This document shows positions 6,779 through 51,090 of a stretch of DNA of 64,000 nucleotides, in pieces. How positions within the stretch are numbered: the stretch's first letter is position 1; each line of letters begins with the position of its first letter. Origin of the DNA: Hypanus sabinus (lineage: Eukaryota). Under the pieces are notes generated by a model. The model searched no databases. It saw nothing but the letters and a program-made list of their open reading frames with translations, and was not told the DNA's origin. The stretch lies in contig NC_082720.1 in assembly GCF_030144855.1 (NCBI RefSeq), positions 55,986,001 through 56,050,000 on the forward strand, written 5' to 3'. A program made the position numbers and the translations under genes.

Positions 6779-9169
6779 ATGGCGAATTCGCAGAGCACTA
6801 ATTTCACGTTTAGGGCGCTGGTTTTTATTTCCTTTGTTTACGCGGCGAGCCTGGGCTTTGGACTAATTCGCTACACCATTCCAGAGGAAATGGAATATGG
6901 CTCTTTTGTTGGAAATATCGCGGAAAATTTGGGACTAACGAATCGACAATTATCAGCTCGAAAATGTCGCATTGTCTTTCTGGAGGGAAGGCAATATTTA
7001 GAGGTAAATTTGGATACTGGCGTCTTATTTGTCAGCAGTCGAATAGACAGAGAGCAGCTTTGTGCACAGAGTCCTTCCTGTATACTTGGCTTCCAGATAA
7101 TTTTAGAAAACCCTCTCCAAATGCATCGCGGTGAAGTAGAGATTCTCGATATAAATGATAATTCACCCACCTTCCCCGAAAAATCCATTCGCTTGCAGAT
7201 GGCTGAATCCATCGCACCAGGCTCTCGTTACCCACTAGAGAGCGCGCTCGACCTGGACGTGGGAGCAAACACAGTTAATATATACAATATTAGCACCAGT
7301 GAACAATTCCGTTTGAACGTCAACTTCAGGGAGGATGGGAGTACAATTGTAGAGTTGTTATTGGATAAGCCACTGGACCGCGAACAAGAAGCATCGTTTC
7401 AGCTCGTACTGACGGCCTTTGACGGCGGTAAACCTCCGAGATCCGGGACAACTCAAATCACCATCAGCGTACTGGACATCAATGACAATGCACCTGTGTT
7501 CGAGAAAAATGTCTATACGGCCAGCTTGGTAGAAAATGCGCCTTTGGGTACCTTGGTGATCAGAATCAAAGCTGTCGATCTGGACCAAGGTACTAACGCC
7601 GAGGTGAAGTACTCCTTTGCTAATCGTGTTTCAGGCCAAGTGCGTGAACTGTTCAGTTTGGACCCTGAAACTGGGGAGATCAAAGTTCAAGAGCAGCTGG
7701 ATTTTGAAGAAAAGAGCAGTTATGAACTTGATGTACAAGCGGAGGATAACGGATCACCAGCTATTACAGGGCATTCCAAAGTATTGATCAAATTAACTGA
7801 TGTAAACGATAATCCGCCCGAGATAAAGGTAACATCCCTATCTGGCAAGGTCCCCGAAGATGCTACACCTGGGTCAGTCGTAGCTCTAATGGACGTTACG
7901 GATCGCGATTCCGAGGCAAATGGAAAAGTTCACTGTGAGATTCCACTGGGCCTTCCTTTTCAAATTAAATCCTCTCTGAATAAGCATTATGAACTGACCA
8001 CAACCCGCCCGTTGGATCGGGAAACTACCGCAGTCTATAACATACCTGTCACAGCCTGGGACTCTGGGTCTCCTCCATTATCAACAAATAAAACTATCCA
8101 GATAACGGTGTCTGATGTAAATGACAACACACCACAGTTTTCGCAGTCTTCCTACGCTGTCTATGTGATGGAGAATAACGCTCCGGGTGCTTCAATTTTC
8201 GCACTGACTGCGTTCGATCCGGATATGGACCAAAACTCCTATATTTCCTATTCCTTCATCGGGAATCTGCAGGATTCGTTGGTGTCCACTTACTTCAGTA
8301 TTAACTCGATGAACGGTACCATTTACGCTTTGCGCTCCTTTGACTATGAGAAGGTCAAAAGTTTCCAGTTCCACGTTCAAGCCCGTGACGCTGGAGTGCC
8401 TCCGCTGAGCAGCACCGCTGCAGTGAATGTAATTATTCTGGATCAAAATGACAATGCTCCAGTGATCGTTTCTCCTTCCACACCGAGTGGATCATCACCC
8501 ATGGAGATACTGCCCCATTCAGCAGATCAAGGTTACTTGGTCACCAAAGTCTTGGCAACTGATGCAGATTCTGGTCAGAATGCTCGGCTCTCCTATCAGA
8601 TGGTTCAAGCAACCGATCCCACTCTCTTTAGAATAGGGCGCAGTTCAGGGGAAATCAGAACAACGAGAAGCATTTTGGACTTGGATGATACCTCGCAGAG
8701 TATTGTCGTTCTAGTGAGGGATAATGGACAGCCGAGCCTGTCCAGTACAACTACAATATTTTTGTCGATTTTGGGGAATGTTACTGAGAATGTCTCTGAA
8801 ACTAGTGATTTTCATAGTAATCCTCGTTATGTTTCCGACATGAATCTTTATTTACTTGTCACCTTCGGATCAACATCGATTTTGTTCCTTTTGATAATTG
8901 TCTTTTTAATTGTACTAAAGTGTAAACAAGATGGAGGCATTATTCAAGATGGAGGGTGCCCCATTTATTGTTGCCGGCCGAGGAATTCGAAAGAACTCTT
9001 TACCCGTGGCGATGCGCCAAGAGTTCAACTTGATTGTACTGGAACTGGTCAGACTGCACCCTTTCCCGAGAGGTATCATTACTCGGTGTGCTTGTCACCA
9101 GAATCATCCAAGAGTGAATTTCTTTTCTTGAAACCCTACAATCCATCTTTCACTCCAGGTCAATACTAA
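6779..9169 (+). CDS. Clustered protocadherin unit 1, 796 aa (signal peptide, 6 cadherin repeats, TM, short cytoplasmic tail)
   Basis: ATG in ACAATGG context aligned with the paralogues (MANSQ); EC1 IRYTIPEE...VGNIA, CAQSPSC; DINDN/DVNDN/DQNDN Ca-binding linkers; LDRE/LDFE; TM LLVTFGSTSILFLLIIVFLIVL; tail YSVCLSPESSKSEFLFLKP. Confidence 0.96.
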   Translation: MANSQSTNFTFRALVFISFVYAASLGFGLIRYTIPEEMEYGSFVGNIAENLGLTNRQLSARKCRIVFLEGRQYLEVNLDTGVLFVSSRIDREQLCAQSPSCILGFQIILENPLQMHRGEVEILDINDNSPTFPEKSIRLQMAESIAPGSRYPLESALDLDVGANTVNIYNISTSEQFRLNVNFREDGSTIVELLLDKPLDREQEASFQLVLTAFDGGKPPRSGTTQITISVLDINDNAPVFEKNVYTASLVENAPLGTLVIRIKAVDLDQGTNAEVKYSFANRVSGQVRELFSLDPETGEIKVQEQLDFEEKSSYELDVQAEDNGSPAITGHSKVLIKLTDVNDNPPEIKVTSLSGKVPEDATPGSVVALMDVTDRDSEANGKVHCEIPLGLPFQIKSSLNKHYELTTTRPLDRETTAVYNIPVTAWDSGSPPLSTNKTIQITVSDVNDNTPQFSQSSYAVYVMENNAPGASIFALTAFDPDMDQNSYISYSFIGNLQDSLVSTYFSINSMNGTIYALRSFDYEKVKSFQFHVQARDAGVPPLSSTAAVNVIILDQNDNAPVIVSPSTPSGSSPMEILPHSADQGYLVTKVLATDADSGQNARLSYQMVQATDPTLFRIGRSSGEIRTTRSILDLDDTSQSIVVLVRDNGQPSLSSTTTIFLSILGNVTENVSETSDFHSNPRYVSDMNLYLLVTFGSTSILFLLIIVFLIVLKCKQDGGIIQDGGCPIYCCRPRNSKELFTRGDAPRVQLDCTGTGQTAPFPERYHYSVCLSPESSKSEFLFLKPYNPSFTPGQY

Positions 9170-10079
9170 ATTACGAAGTTGTAATTACAAAGGTAAAGGG
9201 GAAGGTTGTTTTTTTTAATCATCACAGTTACTTAAGTTTGGGTGGGAACTACTCCTGGCTTTCGAACGTTGTTCATGATTAAAACCTTGCAATAAACACA
9301 GTTTTGTTATGAAGGGAATGTGATAGCCACCAATGAATTGATTTAAGTATGTAACTTCGATAACCAAGCCGCCTGATCGATGGCAGCCCAATTCCCTAAA
9401 CCCACCTCCACCAAACCCGCTAATCAGGTTTTTTTTATACCGTGACCCGATGACATTATAAAAGCAGAGCTCACTTTCCGAGCGGTAGACGATAAGGATG
9501 ACATTTTCTTCTCCCGTACTGTTAATCCATTGAAAGTCTGTATAGGTTGCACAGACTCTTATAGATTTATTCCCGGCATTTGAATTTCTTTATGAAAATG
9601 CAGAATTAAGATAACGGAAGTTTAATGGTTAATTTGACCATCAGATTCGGAGCATATCTAGACAAAGAGAAAGATTGTAGGCTGCTTCAAGGTTTAATTC
9701 CATTAGACCGTGTCGGTGTTTATGCTTCATAAAGATATTCCCTACTCCATATTCTTCATCCTGGGGCAGCGTTGTGATACTATTTATCTGCTTAGCAAAG
9801 TTTTACTTAAAATATATATCTGACTTGATGATATGCAGTTCAGTGTTCTTCAGTCTTTAAAATAAACTGTTCTTTTCTGAATAAGTTGCTAATTTATAAA
9901 TACAGATTATTTTTATGATCCGTAGTCTGCAGGTGCGTTATTTCCATTCTTTACGGTTTGCTAATGTAAAAAAATCTCTTTATTTAGCTTGTTAATTTTT
10001 GCTAGAAACTCTATTAGTGCAACTCAAAATTCATTGTTTAGCAATGCTCCTAAAGTTTCTTAATTTACTATAGTATAGT

Positions 10080-10530
10080 GGATACTAGAGAAAGTCCAGA
10101 AGAAATTTACATGAATTGCAGAGCGTGTCTCATGTCAGCAGGTTGAGTGAACTTTGCCTTTTCTCCTTGGAGCGACGAAGGATGAGAGGTGACCTCATAA
10201 ATGTGTATAAGATGGCCAGAGCCATTGATCGTGTGGATAGCTAGAGGATTTTTCCTAGGGCTGAAATGACTAACACAAGGGGGCTTTGAAAGTGCTTGAA
10301 AGTAGGTACAGAGGGGATATCAGGGGTACTTTTTTCATAAAATTGATGTGGTGGAGGCGGATACATTCGGATTTTTTAAGAAAATCTTAGGTAGGTACAA
10401 GGAGCTTAGAAAAATAGAAGGCTATACGGTAGGGTAATTCCGACAAATTCCAGAGTAGGTTACATGGTCGGCACAACATTGTGCGCCAAAGGGCCTGTAA
10501 AGTGTTTTAAATTTCTATGTTCTTATAGAA
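10080..10530 (+). mobile_element. CR1 LINE 3' fragment
   Basis: TTTTCTCCTTGGAGCGACGAAGGATGAGAGGTGACCT... same family as 5750-6150; tail TTTCTATGTT. Confidence 0.85.
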
Positions 10531-15838: not shown

Positions 15839-15935
15839 GCTTTAAGAAATGCATTCTGCAGTTATTGACTGCCCTTATTATACCGCAGGCCGCCAATAGA
15901 AATCCACTTTCAGCTGGAGATCCATTGCCCCTCCT
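15839..15935 (+). promoter_or_regulatory. Pcdh unit 2 promoter cassette
   Basis: GCTTTAAG 15839, ATTGAC 15864, CCAAT 15893, GAGATCCATTGC 15917; CCAAT is 191 nt upstream of the ATG. Confidence 0.8.
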
Positions 15936-16083
15936 CGCTAGTGACGGAAAGATTTTCCATTGATACTGCTGAACTAAAGCTCCCCGGAACATAATCTACG
16001 TGAATTCTGCGTACGGATCGAAGGATTCATTTGCCGACAGAGCTCCTGAAACGTTTGCACAGATAATAATTGGCGCAGAGACT

Positions 16084-18477
16084 ATGGCGAATTCGCAGAG
16101 AAACAACGCCTTGATATTGATCATGCTGATTTTTATTTTCCTTGTTTTCGTATTGAGACAGGGAGTGGGTCTGATTCGCTATTCTATTACAGAAGAATTG
16201 GAATATGGCTCTTCTGTCGGGAATATTGCTGAACATTTAGGACTAATCGCTGGAGAATTATCAGCACGAAAATGTCGCTTAGTCTCCGCCGACGGAAGCC
16301 GGCACTTCCAGGTAAATTTAGAGACTGGTGTCCTGTTTGTTAGCAGTCGAATAGACAGAGAACAGCTTTGTGCACAAAGCCCGTCTTGTAATCTTGCCTT
16401 CCAGATAATACTAGAAAACCCCCTCGAAATGTACCGCGGTGAAGTGGAGATTCTCGATATAAATGATAATTCGCCTTCTTTCCCAGAGAACGCCATTGTC
16501 TTGCAAATGGCTGAATCTGTTGCACCGGGTTCCCGCTTCCCACTAGAGAGCGCACTTGATCCAGATGTAGGATCAAACACCGTCAATACGTATATAATCA
16601 GTCCCAACGAGAATTTTGGTTTGAAGGTGCATGTCAGAAAGAATACCGTTACAAATGCAGAGTTACTGTTGGAGAAATTTTTGGACCGTGAAAAGCAGGC
16701 ATCGTTCCAGCTTGTTCTGACGGCTGTTGACGGTGGCAAGCCTCAGAGAACCGGGACAACTCAACTCACCATTAGTGTACTGGACAGCAACGATAATGCG
16801 CCTGTATTCGAGAATGATATATATACTGCAAACCTGGAAGAAAACGCACCAGCAGGAACCTTGGTGATCAGAATCAGAGCTGTCGATCTGGACCAAGGTA
16901 CTAATGCAGAGTTTAAATACTCGTTTTCTAATCTTGTCCCAGAGAATGTACGGGAATTATTCAGTCTGGATCCTGAAACTGGAGAGATCAAAGTTCAGAA
17001 ACCTCTAGATTATGAAAATGAAAAAAGTTATGAACTTGATGTCCAGGCCGTGGATAATGGTTCACCATCAATTACAGGACATTCCAAAGTACTGATCGAT
17101 TTGATTGATATGAATGATAACGTCCCTAAGATTACAGTGACCTCCATGTCTGGCAAAGTCCCTGAAGATGCTGCACCCGGGACAGTGGTTGCCCTAATTG
17201 ATGTAACTGATCGCGATTCCGGAGCAAACGGAAAAGTTCACTGTGATATGCCAGTCGACCTTCCCTTTAAAGTTCAGTCATTTCTGAACAACCATTATAA
17301 AGTGACCACCACTCGTCTGTTGGATCGAGAAACCGCACCAACATATAATATACCTGTCACAGTCTGGGACTCCGGATCTCCTCCTCTATCAACAAATACA
17401 ACTATCGAGATAGTGGTGTCTGATGTAAATGACAACACACCACAATTTTCCCAGTCCTCTTACGCCGTCTATGTGATGGAGAATAACGTTCCGGGTGCTT
17501 CTATTTTTGCACTGACTGTTTTCGATCCTGATCTGGACCAGAATTCTTATATCTCTTATTCATTCACGGGGAACCTGCAGGATTCGGTGGTGCCCACTTA
17601 CTTCAGCATTGGTTCGATGAACGGGACCATTTACGCATTGCGCTCATTTGACTACGAGCAGGTTAAAAGCTTCCAGTTCCATATTCAAGCCCGTGACGCT
17701 GGAGTGCCCCCGCTGAGCAGCAGCGCTACAGTGAGTGTCATTGTCCTGGATCAAAATGACAATGCACCAGTGATTATTTATCCTTCCGCACCGAGTGGAT
17801 CATTACCCATGGCGATCCTGCCCCATTCAGCAGGTCAGGGGTACTTGGTCACCAAAATCATGGCGACTGATGCAGATTCAGGTCAGAATGCTCGTCTCTC
17901 CTATCAGATAGTTCAAGCTACTGATCCTACTCTCTTTCGGATAGGTCGGAATTCAGGGGAAATCAGAACAACGAGAAGTATTTTGCAGCCGGATGATACC
18001 TCGCAGAATTTAGTCGTCTTAGTGAGAGATAACGGACAGCCGAGCCTGTCCAGTACAGCAACAATATTTTTCTCCATTTTAGGGAATGTTACTGAGAGTG
18101 TCTCCGAAATTAGGGATTTTGATATTAATCCTAGTTATGTTTCGGACATGAATTTTTATTTACTTGTCACATTCAGATCAACATCGATTTTGTTCTTTCT
18201 GATCATTGTCTTCTTGTTTGTAGTAAAGTGTAAACAAGTTGGCGGCATAGGTCAAGATGGCGGATGCCCAATTTGTTGTTGCCGACCCAGGAATTCGAAG
18301 GAAGTATTTATTCGTGGCGATCCGCCAGGGGATCCTTTAAATTGTGCTGGAACTGGTCAGAATGGACCTTTCCCCGAGAGTTATCAGTACTCGGTGTGCT
18401 TGACACCGGAATCATCGAAGAGCGAATTTCTTTTCCTGAAACCGTACAATCCAAGCTTCACTCAAGTTCAACACTAA
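16084..18477 (+). CDS. Clustered protocadherin unit 2, 797 aa
   Basis: ATG at 16084 (MANSQRNN) aligned with the paralogues; same 6-EC/TM/tail architecture; uninterrupted ORF. Confidence 0.96.
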   Translation: MANSQRNNALILIMLIFIFLVFVLRQGVGLIRYSITEELEYGSSVGNIAEHLGLIAGELSARKCRLVSADGSRHFQVNLETGVLFVSSRIDREQLCAQSPSCNLAFQIILENPLEMYRGEVEILDINDNSPSFPENAIVLQMAESVAPGSRFPLESALDPDVGSNTVNTYIISPNENFGLKVHVRKNTVTNAELLLEKFLDREKQASFQLVLTAVDGGKPQRTGTTQLTISVLDSNDNAPVFENDIYTANLEENAPAGTLVIRIRAVDLDQGTNAEFKYSFSNLVPENVRELFSLDPETGEIKVQKPLDYENEKSYELDVQAVDNGSPSITGHSKVLIDLIDMNDNVPKITVTSMSGKVPEDAAPGTVVALIDVTDRDSGANGKVHCDMPVDLPFKVQSFLNNHYKVTTTRLLDRETAPTYNIPVTVWDSGSPPLSTNTTIEIVVSDVNDNTPQFSQSSYAVYVMENNVPGASIFALTVFDPDLDQNSYISYSFTGNLQDSVVPTYFSIGSMNGTIYALRSFDYEQVKSFQFHIQARDAGVPPLSSSATVSVIVLDQNDNAPVIIYPSAPSGSLPMAILPHSAGQGYLVTKIMATDADSGQNARLSYQIVQATDPTLFRIGRNSGEIRTTRSILQPDDTSQNLVVLVRDNGQPSLSSTATIFFSILGNVTESVSEIRDFDINPSYVSDMNFYLLVTFRSTSILFFLIIVFLFVVKCKQVGGIGQDGGCPICCCRPRNSKEVFIRGDPPGDPLNCAGTGQNGPFPESYQYSVCLTPESSKSEFLFLKPYNPSFTQVQH

Positions 18478-20519
18478 ATCACAAAGTTGTGGTAAACGCG
18501 AGGGTTTTACAAAAGCTTCATATTTAATTAAATTTAAGTGGAATACCACTACTTTTAAAGTAACTGCCATGATTTTGTAGTTTACTATAACTATGCTGTA
18601 CCAACCACGATGGAGTTATTAAGGGAACATCAGAGCCACAATAAATCGATCCAATTAAAAATCATGGGTAACATCAATTATCTGGCTGTCCGATTGATGA
18701 CAACTCATTCCACACGCCAAACTCCAAACCCTTCCCTCCCCCATCCCCGCACTCTCCACCCCTACGACCCAGCGCCCGAATCTCTTGAATAGTTAGCTTG
18801 CTAATCAGGTTTCAAATACATTGATCGGAATTCATTATAGTAACAATGCTTCTTTCCCAAGCGTTTAAGAGGTAATATTAGAAAATAACAACAGTCTTTT
18901 CTTCTCCCTGCTGTCATTCATTCGAACGACTTGTAAGGTTGCACAGACTTGAGTTGTTTGTTTCATATCTGTTTCCTAGTGAAAAAAACAGTATTAGAGA
19001 CAGGAATGTTTACTTCAAGATCGGACCATAAACTTAAGACCTTGCCTGGAGGTAAAGAAACTTCGTCAGATACTTTTTGATTTAATAGGATACGTTACGT
19101 TCAGTGTATATTTACCCCCCACCCCCCCGGCAACTTATTCCAATAGGCCGTTCCGATGTTTTTCCTCCATAAACCCTTCTGTCCTCCGCATTCTTCATCC
19201 ACCTCCAGCAGTATCATACTATGTCTCGTGTGTTTATCAGTCTTTCGCTTACAGGTATCTTTTCTATTTCACTAGATGGGGTGCCATTTTCCCGGTCGAT
19301 AAACGAAATTGTTTTCTCTGAATTACCTGTTGGTTTATATTGACTGATTACTGCTAGGATATCTGATCTTTGGGTTAATGGAAATATTTTCCTCTTTATT
19401 TAGATTTAGAAACGTTATCAAATCAGTCCACTGCCTTCCCTATTCAGCAAATTTCTCAAACTTTTTATTAAATTTACAATTTAGCCCGGAAAATAGCAGC
19501 GTTTTGTGTATTTTTTCTCCTACGCCTCCGTGAAGTTTTCAAATATACTTTCTAACCAAACTTATAGCAATTCTCTGTTCTTAAATTCCTTCCTGCTGTA
19601 GCTGGTTCGCCGCACTCAACGACTGCGTTCCTTATAAATGGCCTATTCTGCAGGATTAGTTTTTAATGTCTTTCTTTTTTCTATCTTCGATCAAATTTCC
19701 ATCAAATCCCCATTTATATTCTTAATTTTCATATATTGCAGTATTCTACTCTTCGAAATTGTAGTAATATACAGATTATCCTTCTGTTGTTTTTCAATTA
19801 GTTTAACCCGATTAGATTGTAATTAAAGTCCGCTTTGAAATCCACAGTCCGTACGTTTTCTTATACTTTTGAATCATTACCTTACACTTGGATAATTTAC
19901 AAATACAGCTTTCAGCACAGGTTGCCTTCCATGGCACTGACATTATGTTTTGATATACCGTTCACCAATAAAATTTAATACTTATTTAGGAACAAAATTA
20001 TGAATAGGTGCCTACTCCCACCGTGATAGGAAACACTTCTACGATTGCATGTTGCATTTAGTAATCGCTAGCTGTTTTCTTTCCAAACTTTATCGAGGAC
20101 TTCCCCTGGGATCAGAGGTTTTAACCTTAATACTGATTAATTCATCGGTTTACACTCTTCGAAATCTCCTAGAATTGTTTTAAGTATTTTTTCCAGATGT
20201 ATAGGATTCGTCCGTGTCTACAGAAACCACACAGGCATTGATCATTTTAAGTCCTGGCACAGATGGACAGAATCGAGGAGAAGGGAAGGCGTTTGGCAGG
20301 CTTGCTTTCATTGGTTAGTGTATTATGTAGAAGCGTTAGGACACCATGCTGCAGCTGTACCTGTTGTTAGCGAGACCACATATGGAATTCAGCATGTAGT
20401 TTTGGTCGACCAGATATGAAAACGGCAGAAAAGGTGCAGATAAGATTAATGAGGTTGCTATAAGGACTGGAGGACTTGAGTTTCTGATACAGGTTGGGAT
20501 TTTTCCCCCTCGATCTAGG

Positions 20520-32178: not shown

Positions 32179-32338
32179 CGTTGCTGTCGGAAAGGATTTT
32201 CCATTGACATTGTGGAACTCCAGCTCAAAGGAACATTATCTGTATGTAAATACATCGGTTAAAGGATTTCTTACCGATAGAACTGCCGAAACGATTGCAG
32301 AGATATAATAAGGATAACAGACTTTCATTGCAGAGACA

Positions 32339-37405: not shown

Positions 37406-37689
37406 AACGCCGTGAATGCTGGTACAATGTTAATGTTGAAAAACAGATTCATGGAGAGAAAATGTTAAGACCCATATGGGCCAAATGTAGTGAAAGGGGA
37501 TTAGCTCCAACAGACATTTGGGTCTGCATTGGCGATGGGCAAGTGGCCTGTTTCTCTCTGGTACATTGCTACGACCCCCGTCACTGGCTTGTGAACCAAC
37601 CCGAATAAAGGTGACTTAAAATAAATATGAATTTTTGTCAATATAGGCGAGCTCACAATGTGCACTTGTTGGAGCTAGAAGGCCATAAG

Positions 37690-38242: not shown

Positions 38243-38678
38243 CAGCATATTTCAGCCCATAATATAGTGCTGAACTCGTAAACTACACAAGAAACTGCCT
38301 AGAATTTCCCTTGCGCATCGCCCTCTATTTTGCTAAGCTCCATGTACCTATCTAAGAGGTTCTTAAAAGACCCTGTTATATCCATTTCCACCACCGCTGC
38401 CAGCAGGGCAATCCACCCACCCACCACTCTCTGTGTGAAAAACTTACCCCTGCCATCCTTCTGGTACCGATTTCCAAGTACCTCAAAACTATGTGCCCTG
38501 GTGTTAGTCATTTCAGCCTTGGGAAAAAGCCTCTTGCTATCCACACGATCAATGCCCCTCATGATCCTATCAACTTCTATCCGGTTAACATTCATCTTCC
38601 ATCGCTCCAAGGAGAAAAGGCCACGTACACACAGCCTATTCTCATAAGGTACGCCCTCCAATCCAGGCAACATCCTTG

Positions 38679-38814
38679 AAAACACGAGGAAATCTGCAGA
38701 GGCTGTAAATTCATGCAACACACACAAAATGCTGGTGGAACACAGCAGGCCAGGCAGCATCTATAGGGAGAAGCACTGTCGACGTTTCGGACCGAGACCA
38801 TTCTTCAAGACACC
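38679..38814 (-). mobile_element. Solo Penelope pseudo-LTR fragment with degenerate hammerhead; TSD TCCTTG
   Basis: TCCTTG at 38673-78 and 38815-20; the minus strand reads GTCTTGAAGAATGGTCTCGGTCCGAAACGTCGAC. Confidence 0.85.
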
Positions 38815-39760
38815 TCCTTGTAAATCTCCTCTGCACTTTCTCTAAAGTATCTACATCCTTCCTGTAGTGAGGTGACCAGGACTGCACACAGTGCAACATG
38901 TGGGGTCTGACCAAGCTCTTCTATACCTGTGGCACTACCTTATGGCTCTTGAACTCAATCCCATAGTTGATAGATGACAAGACACCATACGCCTTCTTAA
39001 CAACACAGTCAACCTGCACAGCATATTTGAGTGTCCTATCGACACAGACCCCATGATCTCTCAAATTCTCCACACTGCCAAGATTATTACAATTTATTTT
39101 ATATTCTGTCTTCAAATTTGACCTACTAAAGTGAACTGCTTCACAGTTATCTGGGTTGAAGTCCATCTGCCACCTCCGAGCCCAGTTCTGCATCATATCG
39201 ACGTTCCGCTGTAATCTTTGACAACCCTCCAGACAATCCACATCATCTCCAAACTTTGTGTCATCTACAAACGTACTAACCCAACCCTTTACTTCTTCAG
39301 CCAGATCATATAAAAATCACAAAAAAGAGGGGGTCCCAGAGCAGATCTCTGATGTCGCCACTTGTCAACGACCTCAATGCAGAATACGAACCATCTACAA
39401 CCACCCTTTGCCTTCCATTTGGAAGACGGTTCTGGATCTACAAAACAAGGTCTCCTTGGATCCCATGACTCCTTACTTTCTGCAGGAGCCTCGCATTGGG
39501 AACCTTATCAAAACCCTTGCTGACATCCTTATACATTACATCCACTGCTCTACCTTCATTAATGTGTTTTGTTACATCTTCAAAGAATTCAATCAGGCTC
39601 GTAAGGCTCAACATGCCGTTGACAAAACCATGCTGAATATTCCTAATCAGATTATGCCTCCCCAAATGTTTATAAATCCTGCGTCTCAGGATCTTATCCA
39701 ACAACTTGCCCACCACTGAAATCAGTCTCACTGGCCTATAATTTTCTGTGTTATCTCTAC

Positions 39761-40660
39761 TGTTATGTGGTGGGCACCAGTGAATATCGAATGGTGTCAG
39801 GGTTCATAAACAAACATAAACATTTATTAAACTCTGCGTAATAAAAGTGAAAAGTAAACAAACGACTAACGTAACCGGAAGTTAACTGTTGTACGGCAAT
39901 TTAACAAACAGCCAAACTCAGGAACAGTTCTTAAAGTGGTAAATTCGAACACAGTCTTAAAGTGGTTTATCCAGTCATTAAGGAGAGACTGTACTGCAAC
40001 AATTCCTCTGAAGAAAATGACGATTCTGCCGATCACAGTCGAGAGATGCCTTGTCGAAAGGATTCACGACGAAGGAACTAAAACGGCTTAAAGGAACTGG
40101 GCTCTTTGCTGGAGGGTGAACACTTCACAAACCTTCCTGGTCTTGCAGGAGTTATCTCAGATGCAAGTCACTATTCCTGAACGAAGATTCAGTAAGGTGG
40201 ATCCTTTACAGACCCGCCGAACGACACAAGCTTTACTCGATTATTCGGGTTCCCGTACTTCGGTAAGGTCTTCACTCTCCAACACTAGACTGTAAAGGTA
40301 AATCAGAAGGTGCACCAAACCAGAAGTGGCAGCGATTGGTGAAACTGCCGACACAACGGTTTGGCACTTACAATAGAAAGTAAAAACTCCACATTAAAAC
40401 GAAACTGCGTCATGAAACGAACACGCAGCAAAACTAACTATCGAACTACCCTGCGTCACAACAGAGGTTTCCCCTTATATACCTGTTGGAACATGCCATC
40501 ACATGACCGCACACCAGCGTGATAATTACATCATGTGACCTCACACTGGCGGGAAAATTATATCAGCCCACCAACAGAAGACAATTACATCATGCTCACA
40601 AGATACTCAATTACATCATGGTCATAAAACAGTCACATGGTAGCCACGGGGTATGTAACA
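39761..40660 (-). mobile_element. 900-bp solo LTR (TGTTA...TAACA, 4-bp TSD CTAC), probably Gypsy-type
   Basis: CTAC at 39757-60 and 40661-64; inverted termini; minus-strand TATA (TATATAAG ~40474-81) and AATAAA (~39823-28); the host CR1 rejoins across it. Confidence 0.88.
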
Positions 40661-43600
40661 CTACTCACATTCTTGAATCAGGGAACAACATTTTCAACCC
40701 CCAAAACCTCCGGTACTTTATCTGCCACTGTTGATGACGTTAAGAGGCTCAGCAATCTCGCTTCCCACAGTATCCTGCGGTATTTATCATCCGGTCCCTG
40801 CGACTTATCTAACTGAATCCTTTCCAAAAGCTCCAGCACATCCACTTTTCTGAAAGTCTATGTGCTCAAACATTTCAGTCCGCTCTCACTCAACCCCTCT
40901 TAACGGCCAATGTATTTTCCCTGGTGAATACTGAAGCAAAGTATTCATTAAATACCTCCACTACCTCCTCCGACTCCAGGCACAAGTTTCCACTATCGCA
41001 CCTGATTAGTCCTATTCTCACATGACTCATCCTCTTGCTCTTCACATACTTGCAGAATGCTTTGGGGTTTTCTTTAATCCTGCTCACCAAGGCCTTCTCA
41101 TGGCCCCTTCTGGTTCTCCTAACTCCATTCCTAAGCTCTTTCCTAGAAATGTTGTAATTTTCTGGAGCTCTAACAGTACCTAGTTTCTTTAACCTTTCGT
41201 AAGCTTTTCTTTTCTTCTTCACTAGATTATCTGCATCCTTTGAATACCATTGTTGTTTAATCCTGCGATCCTTTCCCTGTCTCAGTGGAACCTGACCCCT
41301 GTTCCCTGAACAGTTGCCACATTTCTGCTATGTCTTTCTCTGAGAACATCCGCTCCCAATTTATGATCCCAAATTCCAGCTTAATAGCATTATAATTTCC
41401 ACAAATGAATATTTTCCCAAGCTGTTTGCTGCTGTCCCTCTCCAGCGCTATGGTGAAGGAGATAGTGTTGTGGTCACTACCTCCAAAATGCTCCCCTACC
41501 AAGAGATCTGACACCTGACCAGTCTCATTTCCCAATAGCAATCAATTACACGCTCTCCTGTAGTTAGCGTGTGTACATATTGTGTCAGGAAGCCTTCCTT
41601 AACACAACTAACAAACTCCGCCCCATGTAAACCCCTTGCGCTAAGGGGATGCCGATCAATACTAGGAAAGTTGAAATCTCTCATCACAATAACCCGATTA
41701 TTATTGCACCGTTCCAGAATCTGCCACCCTATCTGCTCCTCGATATCCCTGTTACTATTGTGGAGATCTATAAAAAACACCCAGTAGAGGTATTGCCCCT
41801 TTCCTGTTTCTGACTTCCACCCACACTGACTCAGTAGACCATCCTTCCATGACTTCCACCTTCTCTGCAGCCATGAAACTATCCCAAATTAGCAATGCCA
41901 CGCCACGTTCTTTTAGGAACATCTAAGCCTGGCACACTCAGCAGCCATTCCAGTTCCTGAAACATCCAAGTCTCTGTAATGGCCACAACGTCACAATTCC
42001 ACGTATTGATCCACGTTCTCAGTTCTTCCGCTTTGTTTATAATACCCCTTGCATTAAATGGACACATCTCAAACTATCAGGCTGAACGCATGTTTGCTCT
42101 AATACCTGCCTATCCTTCCTCATAAACTACCCACAAGCTGTCTCTATATGTGCTCCTACCGCCCGTCCTCGGCTCTTTCACTTCGGATCCCAGTCCCCTG
42201 AAAATCTAGTTTAACCGCCCCACCCCCCACAAATAGCATTAATAAACTTTCCCGCCGGGATATGGGTCCTCCTCGGATTCAAGTGCAATTCATTCTTTTT
42301 GTACAGGTCACACCTGTCCCAGAAGAGATCCCAATGATCCAAAAAATCTGAATCCTTGCCCCCTGTTCCAATTCTTCAGCTACACATTTATCCTCCACAC
42401 CATTCTATTCCTATACTTACTGTCACATGGCACAGGCAGCAATCCCGAGATTATAACCTTTGAGGAACTGCTTCTCAGCTTCCTTCCTAACTCCCTGTAT
42501 TCTGCTTTCACGACATCTGGTTTCTTACCCTCCCATTTCAGGATATTGTAGATGCGCTGAGAAGCATCACGATCCTTGGCAGCTGGGAGGTAAATCCTTG
42601 TTACTTTTTCGCGTTCACAGAATCGCCTATCTGCACCCTACCCCTAACTATAGAGTCCCCTATTGCCGCTTCCCTCTTCTTCCAACCCCTTACCCTTCTG
42701 AGCCACCGAGCCAGACTCAGTGCCAGAGACACGTATACTGTTGCATCCCCCAGGTAGGTCGTCACCCCCAACAGCACTCATAATGGAGTCCTTATTGTTA
42801 AGGGGAACAGCCACAGTGGTGCTCTCCATTACACATCTAGAGAGGTTTGTGTAATAAATAGAATTATTTAGCTTTCGGTTTATTATTTGTTTGTTTGTGT
42901 AAAGAAGAACCCGAAACGTTTCAGGTTCTGAAGCTGAAATTCTAACTCGTCTTCTTTCTATATATGATTCCTGACCGGCTGAGTTTTATTTTCAATATTC
43001 TCGCTTTCAGAATTCTGACACTGTTGATTTTTTTTTCATGGTTTTCTTAGAATTTAAGTTAACTTGTTTTTTTTTCTCTCCAGTACTTTTCAATTGCGCT
43101 TCAATTCTATTCCACAGCAAGTGTGATTAGAACCGGGGAAACTGCATTTAAGTAAAAAATTTTGCCCCTTCATGATCGCTTACTCGCTCAAATATTTTTA
43201 GCAGTTTTATATTTGTGAAACAGTACATGGTTATTTTCTGAACTTCCAAGAAGAAATGAACAACATAAGCCACAATTTATTATAGGGCAGATGCAGGACC
43301 ATTATTCCGGGGAATAGAATTAGAAACATAGAAACACGGATAACCTACAGCACAGTGCAGGCCCATCGGCCCAGAAAGCTGTGCCGAACAGGTCCTTACC
43401 TTAGAAATTACCAAAGGTTACCCAGAACCCTCTATTTTTCTAAGCTCCATTTACCTATTCAGAAATCTCTTAAAAGACCCTATCATAATCGCCTCCTCCA
43501 CTGACGCTGGCAGGCCCATTCCCCGCACTCACCACTCTGCGGGTAAAAATCTTACCCCTGATATCTCCCTCACCTAGCACCTACTTTCCAGCACCTTAAA

Positions 43601-44001
43601 ACTGTGCCCTCTCGTGCTAACTATTTCAGCCCTGGGTAAAAGACTCTGACTATCCACACGATCGATACCTCTCATCATCTTATACACCTCTATCAGGTCT
43701 CCTATCATCCTCCGTCGCTCCAAGGAGAAAAGGCCGAGTCCACCCAACTTGTTCTCAGAAGGCATACTCGTCAAACCAGGGAACATCCTTGTAAATCTCG
43801 TCTGCACTCTTTCTATGGTTTCCACATCCTTCCTGAGTGAGGCGACCAGACCTGTGCACACTATTCCAAGTGGGTTCTGACCAGGGTCGTTTACAGCTGT
43901 AATATTACCTGTCGGCTTTTTAACTCAATGCCACGGTTGATGAAGGCCGATGCACTGTATGCCTTCTTAACTACAGAGTCAACCTGCACAGCAGCTTTGA
44001 G

Positions 44002-44032
44002 TACATGGTACATGGTACATAGTACATGGTAC
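44002..44032. repeat. Short tandem repeat (TACATGG)~4
   Basis: GTACATGGTACATGGTACATAGTACATGGTAC inside CR1. Confidence 0.8.
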
Positions 44033-44391
44033 TATGGACTCGGATGCCCAGATCCCTCTGATTCTCCACAATGCCAAGAGTCTTAATATTAATACTATAT
44101 TCTGTCATCATAGTTGACTTACCAAAATGAACCACTTCACACTTACCTTGGTTGAACTTCATATGCCACTTCTCAGCCCAGGTTTGCATCCTGTAGCCTC
44201 TAACAGTCCTCCATGCTATCCACAACCTGCCCAACGTTTGTGCCATCAGCAATTTTTAACCCATCGCTCCACATGTTCATCCGGGTCATTGATTAAAATA
44301 ACGAAGAGTAGGGGTCGCAGAACAGATTCCTGAGGCAAACCAATGGTCACCGACCTCTATTTAGAATATGACCCGTCTGCAACCACTCCTT

Positions 44392-45488
44392 ATAACCATA
44401 TAACAATTACAGCATGGAAACAGGCCATCTTGGCCCTTCTAGTCCGTGCCGAACGCTTACTCTCACCTAGGCCCACCTACCTGCACTCAGCCCGTAACCC
44501 TCCATTCCTTTCCTGTCCATATAATTATCCATTTTTTTAAAATGACAAAAGCGAAACTGCCTCTACCATTCTACTGGAATCTCGTTCCACACAGCTGCCA
44601 CTTTCTGAGTAAACTTTTTGTGTTACCTCCAAACGTTTGCCCTTAATTCTCAACTCAGGACCTCTTGTTTGAATCTCCCCTACTCTCAATGGAAAAAAAA
44701 GCCTTTCCACACCAACTCTATCTATCCCCCTTATAATTTTAAATACCTCTATCAAGTAGCCCCTCAACCTTCTACGCTGCAAAGAATAAAGACCTAACTT
44801 GTTCAAGCTTTCTCTGTAATTTAGGTGCTGAAACCCAGGTAACGTTCTGGTAAATCTCCTCTGAACTCTTTCTATTTTGTTGACATCTTTCTTATAATTC
44901 GCTGACCAGAACTCTATACAATACTTCACAATTGGCCTCAACAATGCCTTGTACAATTTTAACATTACATCCCAACTCCTATACTCAATGCTCTGATTTA
45001 TAAAGGCCAGCATAAAAAAAGCATTCTTCACCACCCTATCCACATGAGATTCCACCTTCAGGGAACTATGCATCATTATTCCTAGATCACTCTGTTCTAC
45101 TGCATTCCTCAATGCCCTACCATTTACCATGTATGTCCTATTTTGATTAGTCCTACCAAAATGTAGCACCTCACACTTATCTGCATTAAACTCCATCTGC
45201 CATATTTCTGCCCACTCTTCTAACTTGCCTAAATCTCTCTGCAAGCTTTGAAAACCCTCTTCATTATCCACAACGCCATCTATCCTAGTACCATCTGCAT
45301 ACTTACTAATACAATTTACCAGCTCATCATCCAGATCATTAATGTATATGACAATCAACATTGGACCCAGTACAGATGGGTACCACTAGTATGGGCACAC
45401 CACTAGTCACCGGCCTCCAACCTGACAGTTATCCACCACTACACTCTGCCATCTGCCATTCAGCCACTGTTCAATCCATTTTACTACT
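44392..45488 (-). mobile_element. Younger 5'-truncated CR1 nested in CR1 (candidate TSD TCCTT)
   Basis: 274-aa minus ORF (YINDLD...KYADGTR...LYKALLRP); different tail (TATAACCATATAACA); TCCTT at 44387-91 and 45489-93. Confidence 0.88.
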
Positions 45489-46642
45489 TCCTTGCATTCT
45501 GTGGGCAAGTAAGTTCTGGATCCTCAAAGCAATATCCCCTTGGATCCCATGCCTCCTTACTTTCTCACGAAGCTTTGCATGGAGTTATCAAATGCCTTGC
45601 TGAAATCCATACACACTACTTTTACTGCTCTACCTTCATCAATGCGTTTAGTCAAATCCTCAGAAAAATCAGTCAGGCTCGTAAGGTATAACCTGCCCGT
45701 GACAGAGTCACGCTGACTATTCTTAATGCCTCTCCAAATGTACACAAGTCCTGCCTCTCAGGGTCTTCTCCATCAACTTACCAACCAATGAAGTAAGACT
45801 CACTGGTTTATAATTTCCAGGGCTATCTGTACTCCCTTTCTTTAATAAGGGAACAACGTCTGGAGCCCTCCAATCCTCCAGAATCCCATTGAAGAGGCAA
45901 CAAGCATCGCCCAAGGCTCAGCAATATCCTCCCTCGCCTCCCACAGTAGCCTGGGGTATAGCTCATCTGGTCCCTGTTACCTATCCAACTGGATGCTCTC
46001 CAAAAGCTTCAACTAATCCTCTTTCTTAATATCTACATGCTCAAGTTTTCAGTCCACTGTAAATCATCCCTACAATCGCCAAGATCCTTTTCTGTCGTGA
46101 ATATTGAAGCAAAGTACACATTAAGTACCTCTGCTATGTCTTCCGGTTCCATACAGAATTTTCCACTTTCACACTTGATTGGTCCTAACCTCTTACAGCT
46201 TATCCTCTCGCTCTTCACGTACTTGCAGAATGCCTTGTGGTTTTCCGTAATCCTGTCCACCAAGGCCTTTTCATGGCCCCTTCAGTCTCTGCCAATTTCA
46301 GTCTTAAGCTCCTGCATGCTAGCCTTATAATCTACTAGATGTCTAGCACTACCGAGTTCTTTGAACGTTTCGTAAGGTTTTCCTTTATCCTTGACTAGAT
46401 TTACAACAACCTTTGTACACCACGTTTCCTGTACCCTACAATCCTTTTCGTCTCATTGAAATGTATTTATGCAGAACTCCACGCAAATATCCCCTGAACA
46501 TTTTTCACATTTCTTCCGTACATTTCCCTGAGAACAACTGCTCCCAATTTATGTTTCCAACTTCCTGACTGATAGCCTCATGTCTCCCCTCACTCCTTTT
46601 AAAAGCTTTCCGAACTTATCTGTTCCTGTCCCTCTCCAATGT

Positions 46643-46756
46643 GACCAATTAACCTCCTAACCAGTACGTCGTTGCGATGTGTGAGAAACCTGGAGGAAAC
46701 ACTCACAGTCATGCAGAGAGCATACAGACACCTTACAGACAACTGCAAGAACTCAA
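46643..46756 (-). mobile_element. V-SINE-like fragment
   Basis: CCAATTAACCT...GAAACCTGGAGGAAACACTCACAGTCA...CATACAGACACCTTACAGAC resembles the reverse complement of the vertebrate V-SINE central domain. Confidence 0.6.
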
Positions 46757-46920
46757 CTGAGAGGCAGGACTTATGTACATTTGGAGAGGCATAATATGAT
46801 TAAGAATAGTCAGCATGACTCTGTCAAGGGCAGGTTATACCTTACGAGCCTGACTGATTTTTCTGAGGATTTGACTAAACGCATTGATGAAGGTAGAGCA
46901 GTAAAAGTAGTGTGTATGGA
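46757..46920 (+). repeat. Inverted local duplication of 45606-45761
   Basis: Reverse complement nearly identical (3 substitutions plus one 8-nt indel by manual alignment). Confidence 0.9.
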
Positions 46921-47709
46921 GATAGAATTGTGAGCACTATTTACAAAATGCTCTCCCACTGGGAGATTTGATACCTGACTAGGTTCATTTCCCAATACCA
47001 GTTAAAGTTCCACCCCACCTCTTGAAAGCCTGTCTACATGTTGTGTCAAAAAACCTTCCTGAACACACCTAACTCCACGACATCTAAACATCTTGTTCTG
47101 GGGAGATGTCAGTCGATATTTGGGAAATTAAAATCTCCCACCACGACAACCCTGTTATTAATAGACCTTTCCAGAATCTGTCTCCCTATCTGCTCATCGA
47201 TGTCCCTATTACTATTGGGTGGTCTATAATAAATACCCTGTAGAGTTATTGACTCCCTCCTGTTCCAAACTTCTACCCACCGAGACTCTACGTAGACAAT
47301 CCCCCATGACTTCCTCCTTTTCTGCAGATTTAGGACGGAAATGAGGATATATTCTATATCCCAGACAGCAGAAAGGGGAGAAGGCAGAGGAATAGTGTTC
47401 AGATGGATTAAAAAAAAGCCCACGATAGAATGGTGAGGTAGACTTGATGGGCCGAATTGCCTAATCCTGTTCCCATTTCTTATGGTCATATAGTAGCGAA
47501 TCTGTAGAATTCATTGCCCAGGTAGTCTACCTTATAATATATATTTAAAATATAGTTATGTAGAGTTTTGTATAGCAGAGGATTTAATGGTTATGGGGAT
47601 ATGGCAAATGCATGGACTGAGTCCACCGCCAGATCAGCCATGATCTCCCTGAAAGGTCGAAAAGGCTCGCCAGGTCAGATGGCAGACTGCTGCTCCGATT
47701 TCTAATGTT

Positions 47710-48100: not shown

Positions 48101-48859
48101 CACTTTGGGGCACGGAGAGCCCGACAATCAATACATCCCGTCTCGCAATTATAATTAAGCACAATACACCGTATACGCAATAATTCAGCATCACAATTTT
48201 CTGTCTTCCGAATTATCTCTGTTATCACGACAAACGCTCCTCTTGTTCTTTTATCTTAAGTACAAACAAATGCAGTATATCCCCGTCTCCTCGAACGCAG
48301 TCTACCACATCAGCACTGCAGTACAATTTCTTGATACATGCTGCTTTCCATCTAAACTTTTCTCCTTCCCAACTTTCTTGAACGAGTTTTATCTAGAATT
48401 TTGTGCTAAATCATAAATTTCCCGTCATCTATCATAGAGGATATTAATGTAATTGGTGTGCGATGATAGACTTTGATGAAATATGTGCACAGAAAACCCA
48501 GAATGTTAAGGTGGATGAATATAATTGTTGTATTTCTTGGACATCAAGGAATGCGTTTTCCATTCGTTAGTTGCCAAGAAATACAGCAATTATATTTCCA
48601 CGTCACAGATTGTTTATAGAATCAATACATTCAAAATGCTAAAAATTAAACAGTATTTACACGCCAGCAGTTTAATTTACATGTCAGGATAGTCAAAGAA
48701 GTTTTCTCAAATAGCTGGTGTTCAGATAATTAAAGGACCAAGCGAACTATATGATGATTCTGATCGTTTAGAAACTCAAGACTACCGAAGTACTAAAGCA
48801 CTGATTTTAAATTTCTTGATGAGAAGCTATTGTAAACGCAGGTGGTTCGAGGATTTTAG

Positions 48860-51090
48860 TTGTAATGTTGTCTTCCAGCTAATAAAAGCAAGCTCTCCCT
48901 CTCCTTCGAAATTTACCGCGGTGAAATAGAGCTTCTGGATAAAAGTGGTGATTCTAGATTAAAGTTCGACGTCTTTCCCGGACAAAGACATTGTCCTGCA
49001 AATGGATGAATCTGTTGCACCGTTTCCCACTTCCTGTTTCCTGAACCGTAGCTACTTAATCCAGAACGCGGTCAATCCATATATCATCAGCCCCAACAAG
49101 AAGTCTGGTATGAATGTACACGTCAGAAACAATACTGTACCAGATGCAGAGTGGCAGTAAGAGAAATCATTCGACTGTGAAAAACAAGCATCTTTCCAAC
49201 TTGTATCGACGGCTGTCGACGGCGGAAGGCCTTCAAGATCCGGGATAACTAAGTACTAATACTGGCTACAATAAAAAAAAAGGCACCTATGTTCGAAAAT
49301 GAGGCGGGAAGGAAATGCACTTTTGCGAATGATTCACCATCAATAACTCTTGGAGACGTGAGGCGAGATATAGGCTTATATTGGCTGGAAGAAAGAACAA
49401 GCAGCAATTGACCACAACACTGCATCCTGGAGACTGAGGCTGGGGCCGTGTCTCCAATCGCCTTTACACCGGGGTCCGTGGGAGGACCCACGGTCAGTGG
49501 GAGGAGCCACAGGAGCAGTCAGCGGGGGAGGGCGTGTCCAGACAGGTACATGTAGTTCACTACAGCGAACATTAGTGAACAAAGCTCCAAGGTATTAACT
49601 GCACTTTCGTTAATCTTGTTCCAGGGAGAGCGCATAAGTTATGGGCCTGGTTCCTCAGATTGGTGAGAACGAACTCCAGGAACGGCTAGATTTTGAAGCG
49701 GAGGAATGTCTCGAACTTGATATTTAGACCATGGAGAATTGTTCGTCAGCACTTACAGGATATTCCAAAGTACGAATGCATTTGATTGATGTAAACGATA
49801 TTGCTCCTGAGATAACGGTGTTCTCTTCATGTGGCAAAAATCCCCAAGCCTCTCTTGGAACAGTGATAGCTAAGATGTTCGTTACGGATCGTGATCCCGG
49901 AGAAAACTGGTAAGTTCCGAGCAACATTCCATTGGGTCTTTCCTTTTAAGTTCAGTCCTCCCCGAACAGCCATTATAAAATGATCACCAGTCACCTGTTG
50001 GATGGGGAAACCACCCCAATCACAGCCTGGGTTTTTGGGTGTCCATTATTAACATGTAAAATCATCCATATATTGGCGTCTGATAGCAATAACAGCACAC
50101 CGCAATTTTCCCAATATTTCTACGCCTTCTGTGTGATAAGAATGACTCTACGGATGCAACTATTTTTTGCACTGTCTGCGTTTGATCCGAACCTGGACTA
50201 CATCTCCTATATTGTTACGACTTCAGGGAGAATGTGCGGGATGCACTGGTGTCCATCTATGTTGTGATTAACTCGATGGAAGACAGCATTTGCGCAAAGC
50301 TGTTATTTGAATATGAGAAAATCAAAACCTTCCAAATCAAGCTCGTTCCGGCGATGTGCCACAGTTGAGCAGCAGCGCTACAGTGAAAGTGATCATCCTG
50401 AATCAAACTGACAACGTGTCGGAATTAGTTTTACCTCCAGCACCGTGTAGATCGTGAGCTATGGAGATCCTTCCCCAGTCAGTGGGTCAGCTGTACTTGG
50501 TCACCAAAATCATGGTGACTGATGTAGATTCTGGTCATAATGTTCCGCTCTCCTACCAGATGGTTCAAGCAACTGATCCTGCTCTCTTTAGCATAGAGTT
50601 CAATTTAGGCGAAATCAGAACAACGGGAAGAATTTTGGAGCTGGATGAATGCTACCACGCAAAGTACAATGGTCTTAGTAGGCAATGTCACCGAGAATGT
50701 TCCCGAGAAAGTCTCTGAAACGAAGTACTTTCATAGTAATCCTGATTATGTTTCCGACATTAATGTTTTTTTTTTACTTGTCACCTTCGTATCAAATCGG
50801 TTTTGTTTCTTCTGATTGTCGTTTACTTGGTTTTCTTAAACTAGAAGCAACAAGGCGGTATTGTTGAAGATGTCGGTTCCCCAAGGTTGTTGTTCCAGGC
50901 TGGGAAATTCCAAGGAACCCTTTACTTGGTGCAAGAGAACAAGAGATTTCTGAGGTTGCTTTGGAACTGGTCAGACTGCACCCTTCCGCGAGAGGTATTA
51001 TTACTCGGGGTTTTGTCACCGGAATCATCCAAGAGCGAATTTCTTTTCCTGAAACCCTACATTCCAATCTTAATTGAAGTACATTGTTAA
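48860..51090 (+). pseudogene. Clustered protocadherin pseudogene (unit 5), 5'-deleted, frameshifted, LTR-interrupted
   Basis: Fragmentary ORFs LIDVNDIAPEITV, MEILPQSVGQLYLVTKIMVTDVDSGHNVPLSYQMVQATDP and LSPESSKSEFLFLKPYIPILIEVHC*; nucleotide colinearity with units 3/4 from late EC1 onward; many stops and indels. Confidence 0.93.
49330..49564 (-). mobile_element. 235-bp solo LTR (TG...CA) with 5-bp TSD GCGAA inside the Pcdh pseudogene
   Basis: GCGAA at 49325-29 and 49565-69; removing the insert restores GCACTTTTGCGAACATTAGTGA, matching unit 4 GCACCTTTGGGAACATTGGTGA. Confidence 0.9.

Follow-up and report, generated by a model that had tools for sequence, protein, structure and literature searches.

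Four intact genes and a pseudogene in tandem

The window, i.e. the whole stretch of 64,000 nucleotides of Hypanus sabinus DNA that was analysed, contains four intact protocadherin genes and one decayed pseudogene, all on the forward strand and all of the type that we assign below to epsilon: u1 (positions 6779–9169, 796 aa), u2 (16084–18477, 797 aa), u3 (26662–29052, 796 aa), u4 (32339–34729, 796 aa) and the pseudogene u5 (48371–51090). Translation of u1–u4 gives uninterrupted open reading frames of 2388–2391 coding nucleotides, one exon each. The products begin with a signal peptide, which is followed by six cadherin repeats, a transmembrane segment and a short cytoplasmic domain. Pfam recognizes Cadherin_2, five Cadherin domains and Cadherin_C_2 in the four products, the Cadherin_C_2 profile ending at FLKP. 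The array thus has the general features of clustered protocadherins: one exon of about 2.4 kb per gene, and tandem copies on the same strand with their own conserved promoter. The exact 796-aa product of u1, which is the sister of Mobula protein P0002 in the tree (91%), is found among NCBI proteins, and its Hemitrygon orthologue is likewise 796 aa long; the exact products of u2–u4 were absent from the protein collection searched, u4 being 96% identical to Hemitrygon akajei XP_072923515.1.

The pseudogene u5 was delineated by DNA alignment. About 570 nt are gone, and with them the core promoter, the start codon and the greater part of EC1; the frame changes near positions 50213 and 50336, and there are many in-frame stops. 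Its final 33 nt are still in register with those of u1–u4.

Each intact gene is preceded by a promoter module, located at 6496–6589 (u1), 15839–15931 (u2), 26427–26519 (u3) and 32083–32174 (u4), all on the forward strand. The module consists of two boxes, GCTTTAAGGA and GAGATCCATTGCTCC, flanking a CCAAT box, and lies 143–190 nt upstream of the ATG (190 nt for u1). A fifth module, at 63847–63940 on the same strand, belongs to a next gene whose coding exon begins past the end of the window, indicating that the array continues. The two boxes each occur in five copies in the window, as compared to 0.02 and 0.47 expected by chance, and are separated by 77–79 nt in all five modules; none was found at u5. 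Outside the five units, no further protocadherin-like exon was detected in the window with 128 protein queries, a set without mu, nu or delta constant sequences. The other open reading frames of the window (100–275 aa) gave no Pfam match except for a reverse-transcriptase fragment, and no tandem repeats were found.

The genes group with elephant-shark epsilon proteins

Protocadherin epsilon was reportedly defined in elephant shark (Callorhinchus milii) by Yu et al. in 2008. A phylogenetic comparison with this species, suggested in the preliminary description, placed the window genes inside a clade with the named elephant-shark proteins epsilon4, 5, 8, 9, 14, 17 and 18, with an SH-aLRT value of 100 in both trees. 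Gar and gamma sequences fell outside this clade, as did a model of 1074 aa from Mobula and one of 1338 aa from Callorhinchus. Within the cluster, an epsilon subcluster would be expected between delta and mu. The two trees, one under LG+G4 and one under a C20 mixture, come from quick searches and agree; they cover a sample without named beta, mu, nu or delta sequences. Chimaeric fusion models from Enhydra, Columba, Varanus and Maylandia were dropped, and other bony-vertebrate fusions were trimmed to their best match.

The elephant-shark epsilon proteins (e.g. ABV59322.1, epsilon4, and ABV59323.1, epsilon5) resemble the stingray genes in domain order and in their length of about 800 aa, as well as by their position in the clade. 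They are 57–60% identical to the stingray products, and both carry ...CLSPESSKS[ED]FLFLK[PTS] near the end, with no shared constant region. The GenBank entries of these proteins, 801–827 aa long, have their own tails (except for the near-identical epsilon8/9) and no common C-terminal region: epsilon sequences had been deposited in constant-less form before this analysis, and the design is thus already on record. In line with this, the green anole paper (PMC2764143) attributes constant exons to no subclusters other than alpha, gamma, delta, mu and nu, and bony-vertebrate orthologues of epsilon are denied (PMC2764143).

The five units share a stop codon 10 residues after a common motif

The five units had been described as stopping exactly 10 codons after SEFLFLKP, and translation of u1–u4 together with the DNA alignment of u5 confirmed it. 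The tails read YNPSFTPGQY (u1, TAA at 9167–9169), YNPSFTQVQH (u2, TAA at 18475–18477), CNPSFSQGQC (u3, TAA at 29050–29052), YNLNFTQGQR (u4, TGA at 34727–34729) and YIPILIEVHC (u5, TAA at 51088–51090). In the DNA alignment, the last 33 nt are free of insertions and deletions in all five copies, which start to appear about 13 nt past the stop. Nucleotide identity among u1–u4 shows no sharp fall at the stop because these copies are too recent, and the argument for a single exon consequently rests on the protein tails of other species.

These tails are informative. The stop also lies at FLKP+10 in 42 of the 92 homologues of 750–835 aa, which represent over 15 species of sharks, rays and chimaeras, and its shared position exceeds chance. 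Of the 44 such tails that were tallied, 37 have Q at +7, 30 have Q at +9 and 32 have C at +10. Both the position of the stop and the end residues are conserved across old paralogues. Other tail lengths exist: 21 shark copies end at +19, forming a second shark lineage that groups with epsilon8/9, and in the seven named elephant-shark epsilon proteins the end lies between +23 and +32. By contrast with these tails of 23–32 residues, the stingray genes and most elasmobranch copies have 10 residues after the motif and a ...QxQC end. The tails differ from gene to gene, only the near-identical pair epsilon8/9 having one in common, and hence do not correspond to a shared exon.

The short-tail genes form one clade (SH-aLRT 100) in which sharks and rays are both found, and tail class changes once on the tree. 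The fixed 10-residue ...QxQC tail is older than the shark–ray split, a point that is possibly new, though small. More tentatively, and with the odds rather against it, [YC]xPxxSQxQC-COOH might be a selected cytoplasmic signal with a single origin before that split, i.e. a common C-terminus that every gene encodes for itself, a "micro constant region" with no exon in common. The terminal Cys of the short tail might serve for lipidation or docking.

Candidate splice donors near the stop are weak and poorly conserved

The preliminary description had recognized, just before the stop, only weak phase-1 donors at 9159, 29042 and 34719, with no homologous site in u2. This was borne out, with one addition. 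The sites in u1, u3 and u4 have the sequence AG/GTCA (the slash marks the putative exon end) and score 4.7–6.9 bits with a crude donor matrix; the GT of u1 (9159–9160, forward strand, CAG/GTCAAT) scores 4.8 bits with this matrix and is not conserved in the family. At this position u2 reads CAA/GTTCAA, a one-base shift, and u5 has no GT. The additional site is a weak phase-0 GT, TCG/GTGTGC, within the codons for SVCL in u1, u2 and u4.

In alpha and gamma, each variable exon has a conserved donor at its end and is spliced to three constant exons. These variable exons resemble the units of the array in exon size, domain content, tandem arrangement and the presence of one promoter per exon, and the three AG/GTCA sites would be the true exon ends if the units were variable exons of this kind, spliced to constant exons beyond the window, with the stop three codons on being intronic. 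However, the site is missing in u2 and u5. Moreover, a phase-1 donor requires a GGT codon at +8, and this residue, which is A, G, E or D, is Gly in at most 12 of the 44 short-tail homologues and Ala, Glu, Asp or another non-Gly residue in at least 32, while sharks and rays alike have retained the stop and the three codons that would be intronic. The situation is thus the reverse of that in alpha and gamma: conservation extends to the stop but not to the donor. Finally, two homologue searches revealed no C-terminal extension or constant region in any epsilon-clade protein, nor is there one in the named elephant-shark epsilon proteins; the few longer epsilon-clade models (919 and 869 aa) owe their length to N-terminal extensions. 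The absence of shared constant exons in epsilon holds at the level of open reading frames and annotation, the RefSeq models being predictions. With no conserved 5' donor joined to shared constant exons in this array, an alpha/gamma-like organization appears highly unlikely.

The same phase-1 donors could instead be joined to an acceptor, CAG/AGACAATG, just 5' of the ATG of the next gene, giving in-frame tandem proteins. One Mobula birostris model, XP_072120738.1 (1591 aa), does use the homologous phase-1 donor and is in this respect a counterexample to the single-exon reading: it reads ...FLKPYNPSFSQ-E-T-MANSQ..., precisely such a join. In the window, the u3-to-u4 join would also be in frame by sequence, and CAGAGAC(A/T)ATGGCG is kept before the ATG in all four intact units. 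Yet the conservation of CAGAGACAATGG is explained equally well by start-codon context, a pyrimidine tract is missing at three of the four acceptors, and a second signal peptide and ectodomain following a transmembrane and cytoplasmic segment is topologically implausible. As XP_072120738.1 is one automated prediction, named 'uncharacterized protein', we regard head-to-tail splicing as most improbable.

Likely polyadenylation signals follow the stop in three of the intact genes

AATAAA hexamers had been reported downstream of the stop of u1–u3, at 9291, 18640 and 29166/29207, and were found at these positions. After u1, an ATTAAA and an AATAAA lie at +109 and +122 nt from the stop (9278–9296, forward strand) and are likely poly(A) signals. 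The AATAAA of u2, at +163 nt (18640–18645, forward strand), is homologous to the second of the two found after u3 at +114 and +155 nt (29166–29212, forward strand). Neither AATAAA nor ATTAAA occurs within 1055 nt of the stop of u4, part of its 3' flank having been deleted. Note that u5 has AATAAA at +123 and +196 from the stop.

The proposal that the array is a constant-region-independent subarray, either convergent with Pcdh-beta or ancestral to it, can now be divided. Its first part stands: the conserved stop and end residues, together with the unconserved donor, argue for genes that end at the shared stop without constant exons, and the reading of u1–u4 as single coding exons with no constant region is well supported by sequence comparison. 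The second part, a new kind of array or one tied to beta, is not supported, as the genes belong to the known epsilon subcluster. Taking both aspects jointly, we consider it very probable that the window is part of the protocadherin epsilon subcluster of a dasyatid stingray, comprising u1–u4, the decayed u5 and the promoter module of a next gene, and that the intact genes are single-exon genes without constant exons.

A specific relationship of the array to Pcdh-beta is unlikely

The array, as read here, and Pcdh-beta of mammals, reptiles and coelacanth have much in common: tandem single-exon genes with their own promoters and no constant exons (PMC7811963, PMC2764143), and a cytoplasmic domain that ends in the Cadherin_C_2 motif. 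On this identical gene design and common motif one could regard the array as the cartilaginous-fish orthologue or ancestor of Pcdh-beta, the constant-less state being inherited rather than convergent. However, the YxYxVCL...EFxFLKP sequence initially taken as beta-like is the Pfam Cadherin_C_2 motif, and its VCL...FLxP element is shared by the array and a gamma-B model that is spliced to constant exons, so that it is not a marker of beta. Furthermore, a comparison with solved ectodomains at equal construct length gave 451 bits for gamma-C4, 444 for PCDH10, 386 for alpha4, 357 for beta8, 348 for beta6, 327 for alpha-C2 and 300 for beta1. Of the clustered types with solved ectodomains, beta is the one least similar to the array on these sequence scores, and the tree, which contains no named beta sequence, is not a formal test of this relationship. 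Beta is placed only in lobe-finned fishes and tetrapods (PMC2764143). Overall, orthology or ancestry to beta seems unlikely.

The best solved-structure match over EC1–6 is PCDH10 (6vg4, 674 bits, versus 575 for gamma-B4), which accounts for the automated name 'protocadherin-10-like'. PCDH10 is a solitary gene with several exons, and its protein has a long cytoplasmic domain, whereas the array consists of tandem copies with protocadherin-cluster promoters and a cytoplasmic part of 85 residues.

Discussion

On the single-exon reading, each gene would be transcribed from its own promoter module, about 145–190 nt before the ATG. One coding exon of about 2.4 kb would then provide everything from the signal peptide through the six cadherin repeats and the transmembrane segment to a cytoplasmic domain, about 85 residues long, that ends at SEFLFLKP+10, translation terminating at the common TAA or TGA. 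Judging from the AATAAA and ATTAAA hexamers of u1–u3, the transcript would most likely be cleaved and polyadenylated 130–200 nt beyond the stop, presumably without being joined to any constant exon. As in mammalian beta protocadherins, the ectodomains would be diverse and the cytoplasmic domain would not be shared. Such proteins may act as homophilic recognition units, probably signalling via cis-partners that possess a constant domain.

With the identity of the array settled as stingray members of epsilon, the genes do not represent a new class of neuronal recognition gene. The constant-less, beta-like design of epsilon being known from elephant shark, the finding is real but ordinary. Clustered protocadherins without a constant region occur in all three groups, chimaeras, sharks and rays. 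In most elasmobranch copies the tail is truncated and has a ...QxQC end that has been conserved since before the shark–ray split, and this conserved end would offer a simple handle on the role of the short cytoplasmic end in constant-less protocadherins.

Gene structure and the shared end of the array

The four intact epsilon-type protocadherin genes of the window, u1–u4, were delimited by ORF scan and translation on the forward strand, at 6779-9169, 16084-18477, 26662-29052 and 32339-34729; they comprise 796–797 codons, with pairwise identities of 75–77% (protein) and 78–81% (DNA). Pfam recognizes in u1 a Cadherin_2 domain, five Cadherin stretches and a Cadherin_C_2 domain whose profile ends at FLKP, and a transmembrane segment (LYLLVTFGSTSILFLLIIVFLIVL) is readable in the translation. 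A 796-aa NCBI protein is the exact u1 product, and the Hemitrygon orthologue is also 796 aa long; no exact product of u2–u4 was present among the proteins of the collection searched. Alignment with the intact copies delimits a decayed copy, u5, at ~48.4-51.09 kb (+): ~570 nt are gone, among them the core promoter, the ATG and most of EC1; the frame shifts near 50213 and 50336, and in-frame stops are numerous.

As reported in the preliminary description, the stop directly follows a 10-residue tail after SEFLFLKP in all copies (u1, YNPSFTPGQY; u2, YNPSFTQVQH; u3, CNPSFSQGQC; u4, YNLNFTQGQR; u5, YIPILIEVHC). The five-way DNA alignment contains no indel through the stop, the first ones occurring ~13 nt past it. 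The phase-1 GTs in AG|GTCA context noted just before the stop, at codon +8 of the tail (9159, 29042 and 34719), are indeed weak (4.7–6.9 bits with a crude donor matrix), and u2 does lack the homologous site (CAA|GTTCAA, offset by one base); a donor-site scan found no donor-like GT at the corresponding position of u5. AATAAA was likewise located at 9291, 18640, 29166 and 29207, and AATAAA/ATTAAA lie 109–177 nt 3' of the stop in u1–u3. Neither hexamer occurs in the 1055 nt after the u4 stop (34730-35784), because the block bearing the signal in u1–u3 has been deleted; despite this, the 96%-identical Hemitrygon orthologue is still annotated as a normal 796-aa gene.

Evidence from relatives that translation ends at the shared stop

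The window copies are too recent to decide alone whether the codons before the stop are translated, and we therefore compared relatives. A word search returned ~60 elasmobranch proteins of 779–821 aa (Mobula, Pristis, Hemitrygon, Leucoraja, Amblyraja, Narcine, Scyliorhinus, Carcharodon, Heptranchias, Heterodontus, Chiloscyllium, Rhincodon and others), and further homologues came from a second search that started from an elephant-shark relative. The stop lies exactly at +10 in 42 of the 92 motif-bearing homologues of 750–835 aa from both searches, and the 10-residue tails of the first set (n = 44) are conserved at +7 (Q in 37), +9 (Q in 30) and +10 (C in 32). The short-tail paralogues share only 57–65% identity with the window genes, so that intron sequence between them would not align; a stop fixed at one codon and preceded by conserved residues thus indicates that the codons up to it are translated. 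Furthermore, the 44 tails vary at residue +8 (Ala, 14; Gly, 12; Glu, 9; Asp, 6), and since the proposed donor requires GGT at this codon, the GT is possible in at most 12 of them. Finally, no C-terminal extension was found among the epsilon-clade matches of either search, the two longer proteins (919 and 869 aa) having their extra sequence at the N-terminus and a normal tail at the end. Together, these comparisons support well the single-exon organization suggested earlier.

Among the homologues examined, the +10 stop has clearly been lost secondarily only in an orthologous pair of ray genes, P0073 (Hemitrygon) and P0098 (Mobula), which end ...SQA[QR]C-QSINIG; Gln stands in place of the stop, and the ORF is six codons longer.

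Use of the donor is seen in one RefSeq model, the 1591-aa Mobula birostris XP_072120738.1, in which two adjacent epsilon genes are joined as ...SFSQ-E-T-MANSQ..., from the homologous phase-1 donor to an acceptor (CAG|AGACAATG) ahead of the next ATG. The equivalent u3–u4 join (29042 to 32333/32334) is in frame by sequence. We regard this fusion as an artefact of annotation or the product of rare read-through, because the fused protein is topologically senseless and the acceptors are poor in three of the four window units.

Promoters and intergenic sequence

A promoter module composed of GCTTTAAGRA, a CCAAT box and GAGATCCATTGCYCC lies 143–190 nt upstream of the ATG in every intact unit (box search, + strand: u1, 6496-6589; u2, 15839-15931; u3, 26427-26519; u4, 32083-32174). 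A fifth module, at 63847-63940 (+), serves a gene that starts past the window end; the GCTTTAAGRA to GAGATCCATTGCYCC spacing is constant at 77–79 nt in the five genes. The same search found no module in u5. The sequence around the ATG, CAGAGAC(A/T)ATGGCGAAT, is identical in u1–u4 (6769-6787, 16074-16092, 26652-26670, 32329-32347), while the preceding 100 nt are scarcely alignable; it could be a start-codon context or a 5'UTR element. No upstream ATG occurs within the 40 nt before the start codon of u1–u4 (6739-6778, 16044-16083, 26622-26661, 32299-32338).

Between u2 and u3 lies a LINE-type reverse transcriptase fragment (24059-25792, +; RVT_1, E 4e-31) spread over three ORFs. Much of the intergenic space is occupied by an interspersed repeat family (67–84% identity among copies; 2696-6155 versus 38317-47327, inverted; 10112-10523, 37008-37407 and 58266-58674), whose copies lie where the GC skew is strong (+0.38 at 4-6 kb, -0.2 to -0.36 at 38-46 kb).

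Assignment to the epsilon subcluster and relation to Pcdh-beta

When clustered at 90% identity, the best elephant-shark matches fall together with ABV59322.1 'protocadherin epsilon4' (811 aa) and ABV59323.1 'protocadherin epsilon5' (820 aa); the second search recovered epsilon8, 9, 14, 17 and 18, all these proteins being 801–827 aa long. Their tails after FLK[PTS] have 23–32 residues (for example YNSTLQPSTLRMTDTHGAKNVARNSE, YNSTLPQSTLKITDTNVVKEFDQQFNSAMKGQ and YTATLPYSEVSVNNTTARHEFKH) and are gene-specific apart from the near-identical epsilon8/9, which implies that no constant region common to them was annotated on deposition. The 2008 elephant-shark paper reportedly describes epsilon as devoid of constant exons. 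A green anole study by the same laboratory sets the constant exons of alpha, gamma, delta, mu and nu side by side, epsilon not being included; according to it, bony vertebrates lack orthologues of epsilon, mu and nu (PMC2764143).

The phylogenetic comparison called for in the preliminary description was made against the named epsilon genes, with 47 rows: u1–u4, 30 homologues from elasmobranchs, the 7 named epsilon proteins and 6 segments as outgroup. Four bony-vertebrate models were excluded as chimaeric. The window genes and every epsilon-type sequence form one clade (SH-aLRT 100 under LG+G4 and the C20 mixture model), and on this sequence evidence we assign the former to the known epsilon subcluster as its stingray members. 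The short-tail genes are monophyletic (100), with a single tail-class change on the tree; as they include both sharks and rays, the truncated tail is older than the shark–ray split. A further group, confined to sharks, has tails of 19 residues (CHPTLPFNDLGVRDTNARK or gene-specific variants; 21 proteins) and clusters with epsilon8/9. The sister of u1 is a Mobula protein (91% identity) and that of u4 is Hemitrygon XP_072923515.1 (96%), which places the separation of the four window genes before the divergence of these ray lineages.

A new beta-like subarray, as had been proposed, is unsupported, since the genes sit in a known subcluster. Nor does the YxYxVCL...EFxFLKP motif mark beta: it corresponds to the Cadherin_C_2 domain and is also present in a lizard gamma-B6 model (YSYQVCLSSESRRNELTFLQP). 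Among solved structures, the u1 protein (6779-9166) best matches PCDH10 (674 bits) and gamma-B4 (575) for EC1-6 constructs, gamma-C4 (451), PCDH10 (444), alpha4 (386), beta8 (357) and beta6 (348) for EC1-4, and alpha-C2 (327) and beta1 (300) for EC1-3. Over EC1-6, every clustered ectodomain (alpha, beta or gamma) thus scores below the non-clustered PCDH10, which explains the automated names 'protocadherin-10-like'. Beta is the least similar clustered type among these ectodomains, in a ranking of scores and not a phylogeny. Convergence with beta is better supported than shared descent, though a ranking of scores and a tree with named epsilon genes do not prove it.

Proposed working of the array

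Of the features of these genes, only the conserved 10-residue ...QxQC end shared by most elasmobranch copies may not have been described before. We propose that each gene would be transcribed from its own promoter, translated as one exon through to the shared stop and, in u1–u3, probably polyadenylated after the AATAAA/ATTAAA 109–177 nt downstream. The products would combine diverse ectodomains with an 85-residue cytoplasmic part lacking a common domain. On the model of beta protocadherins, they would broaden the recognition repertoire and signal via cis-partners that bear a constant domain.
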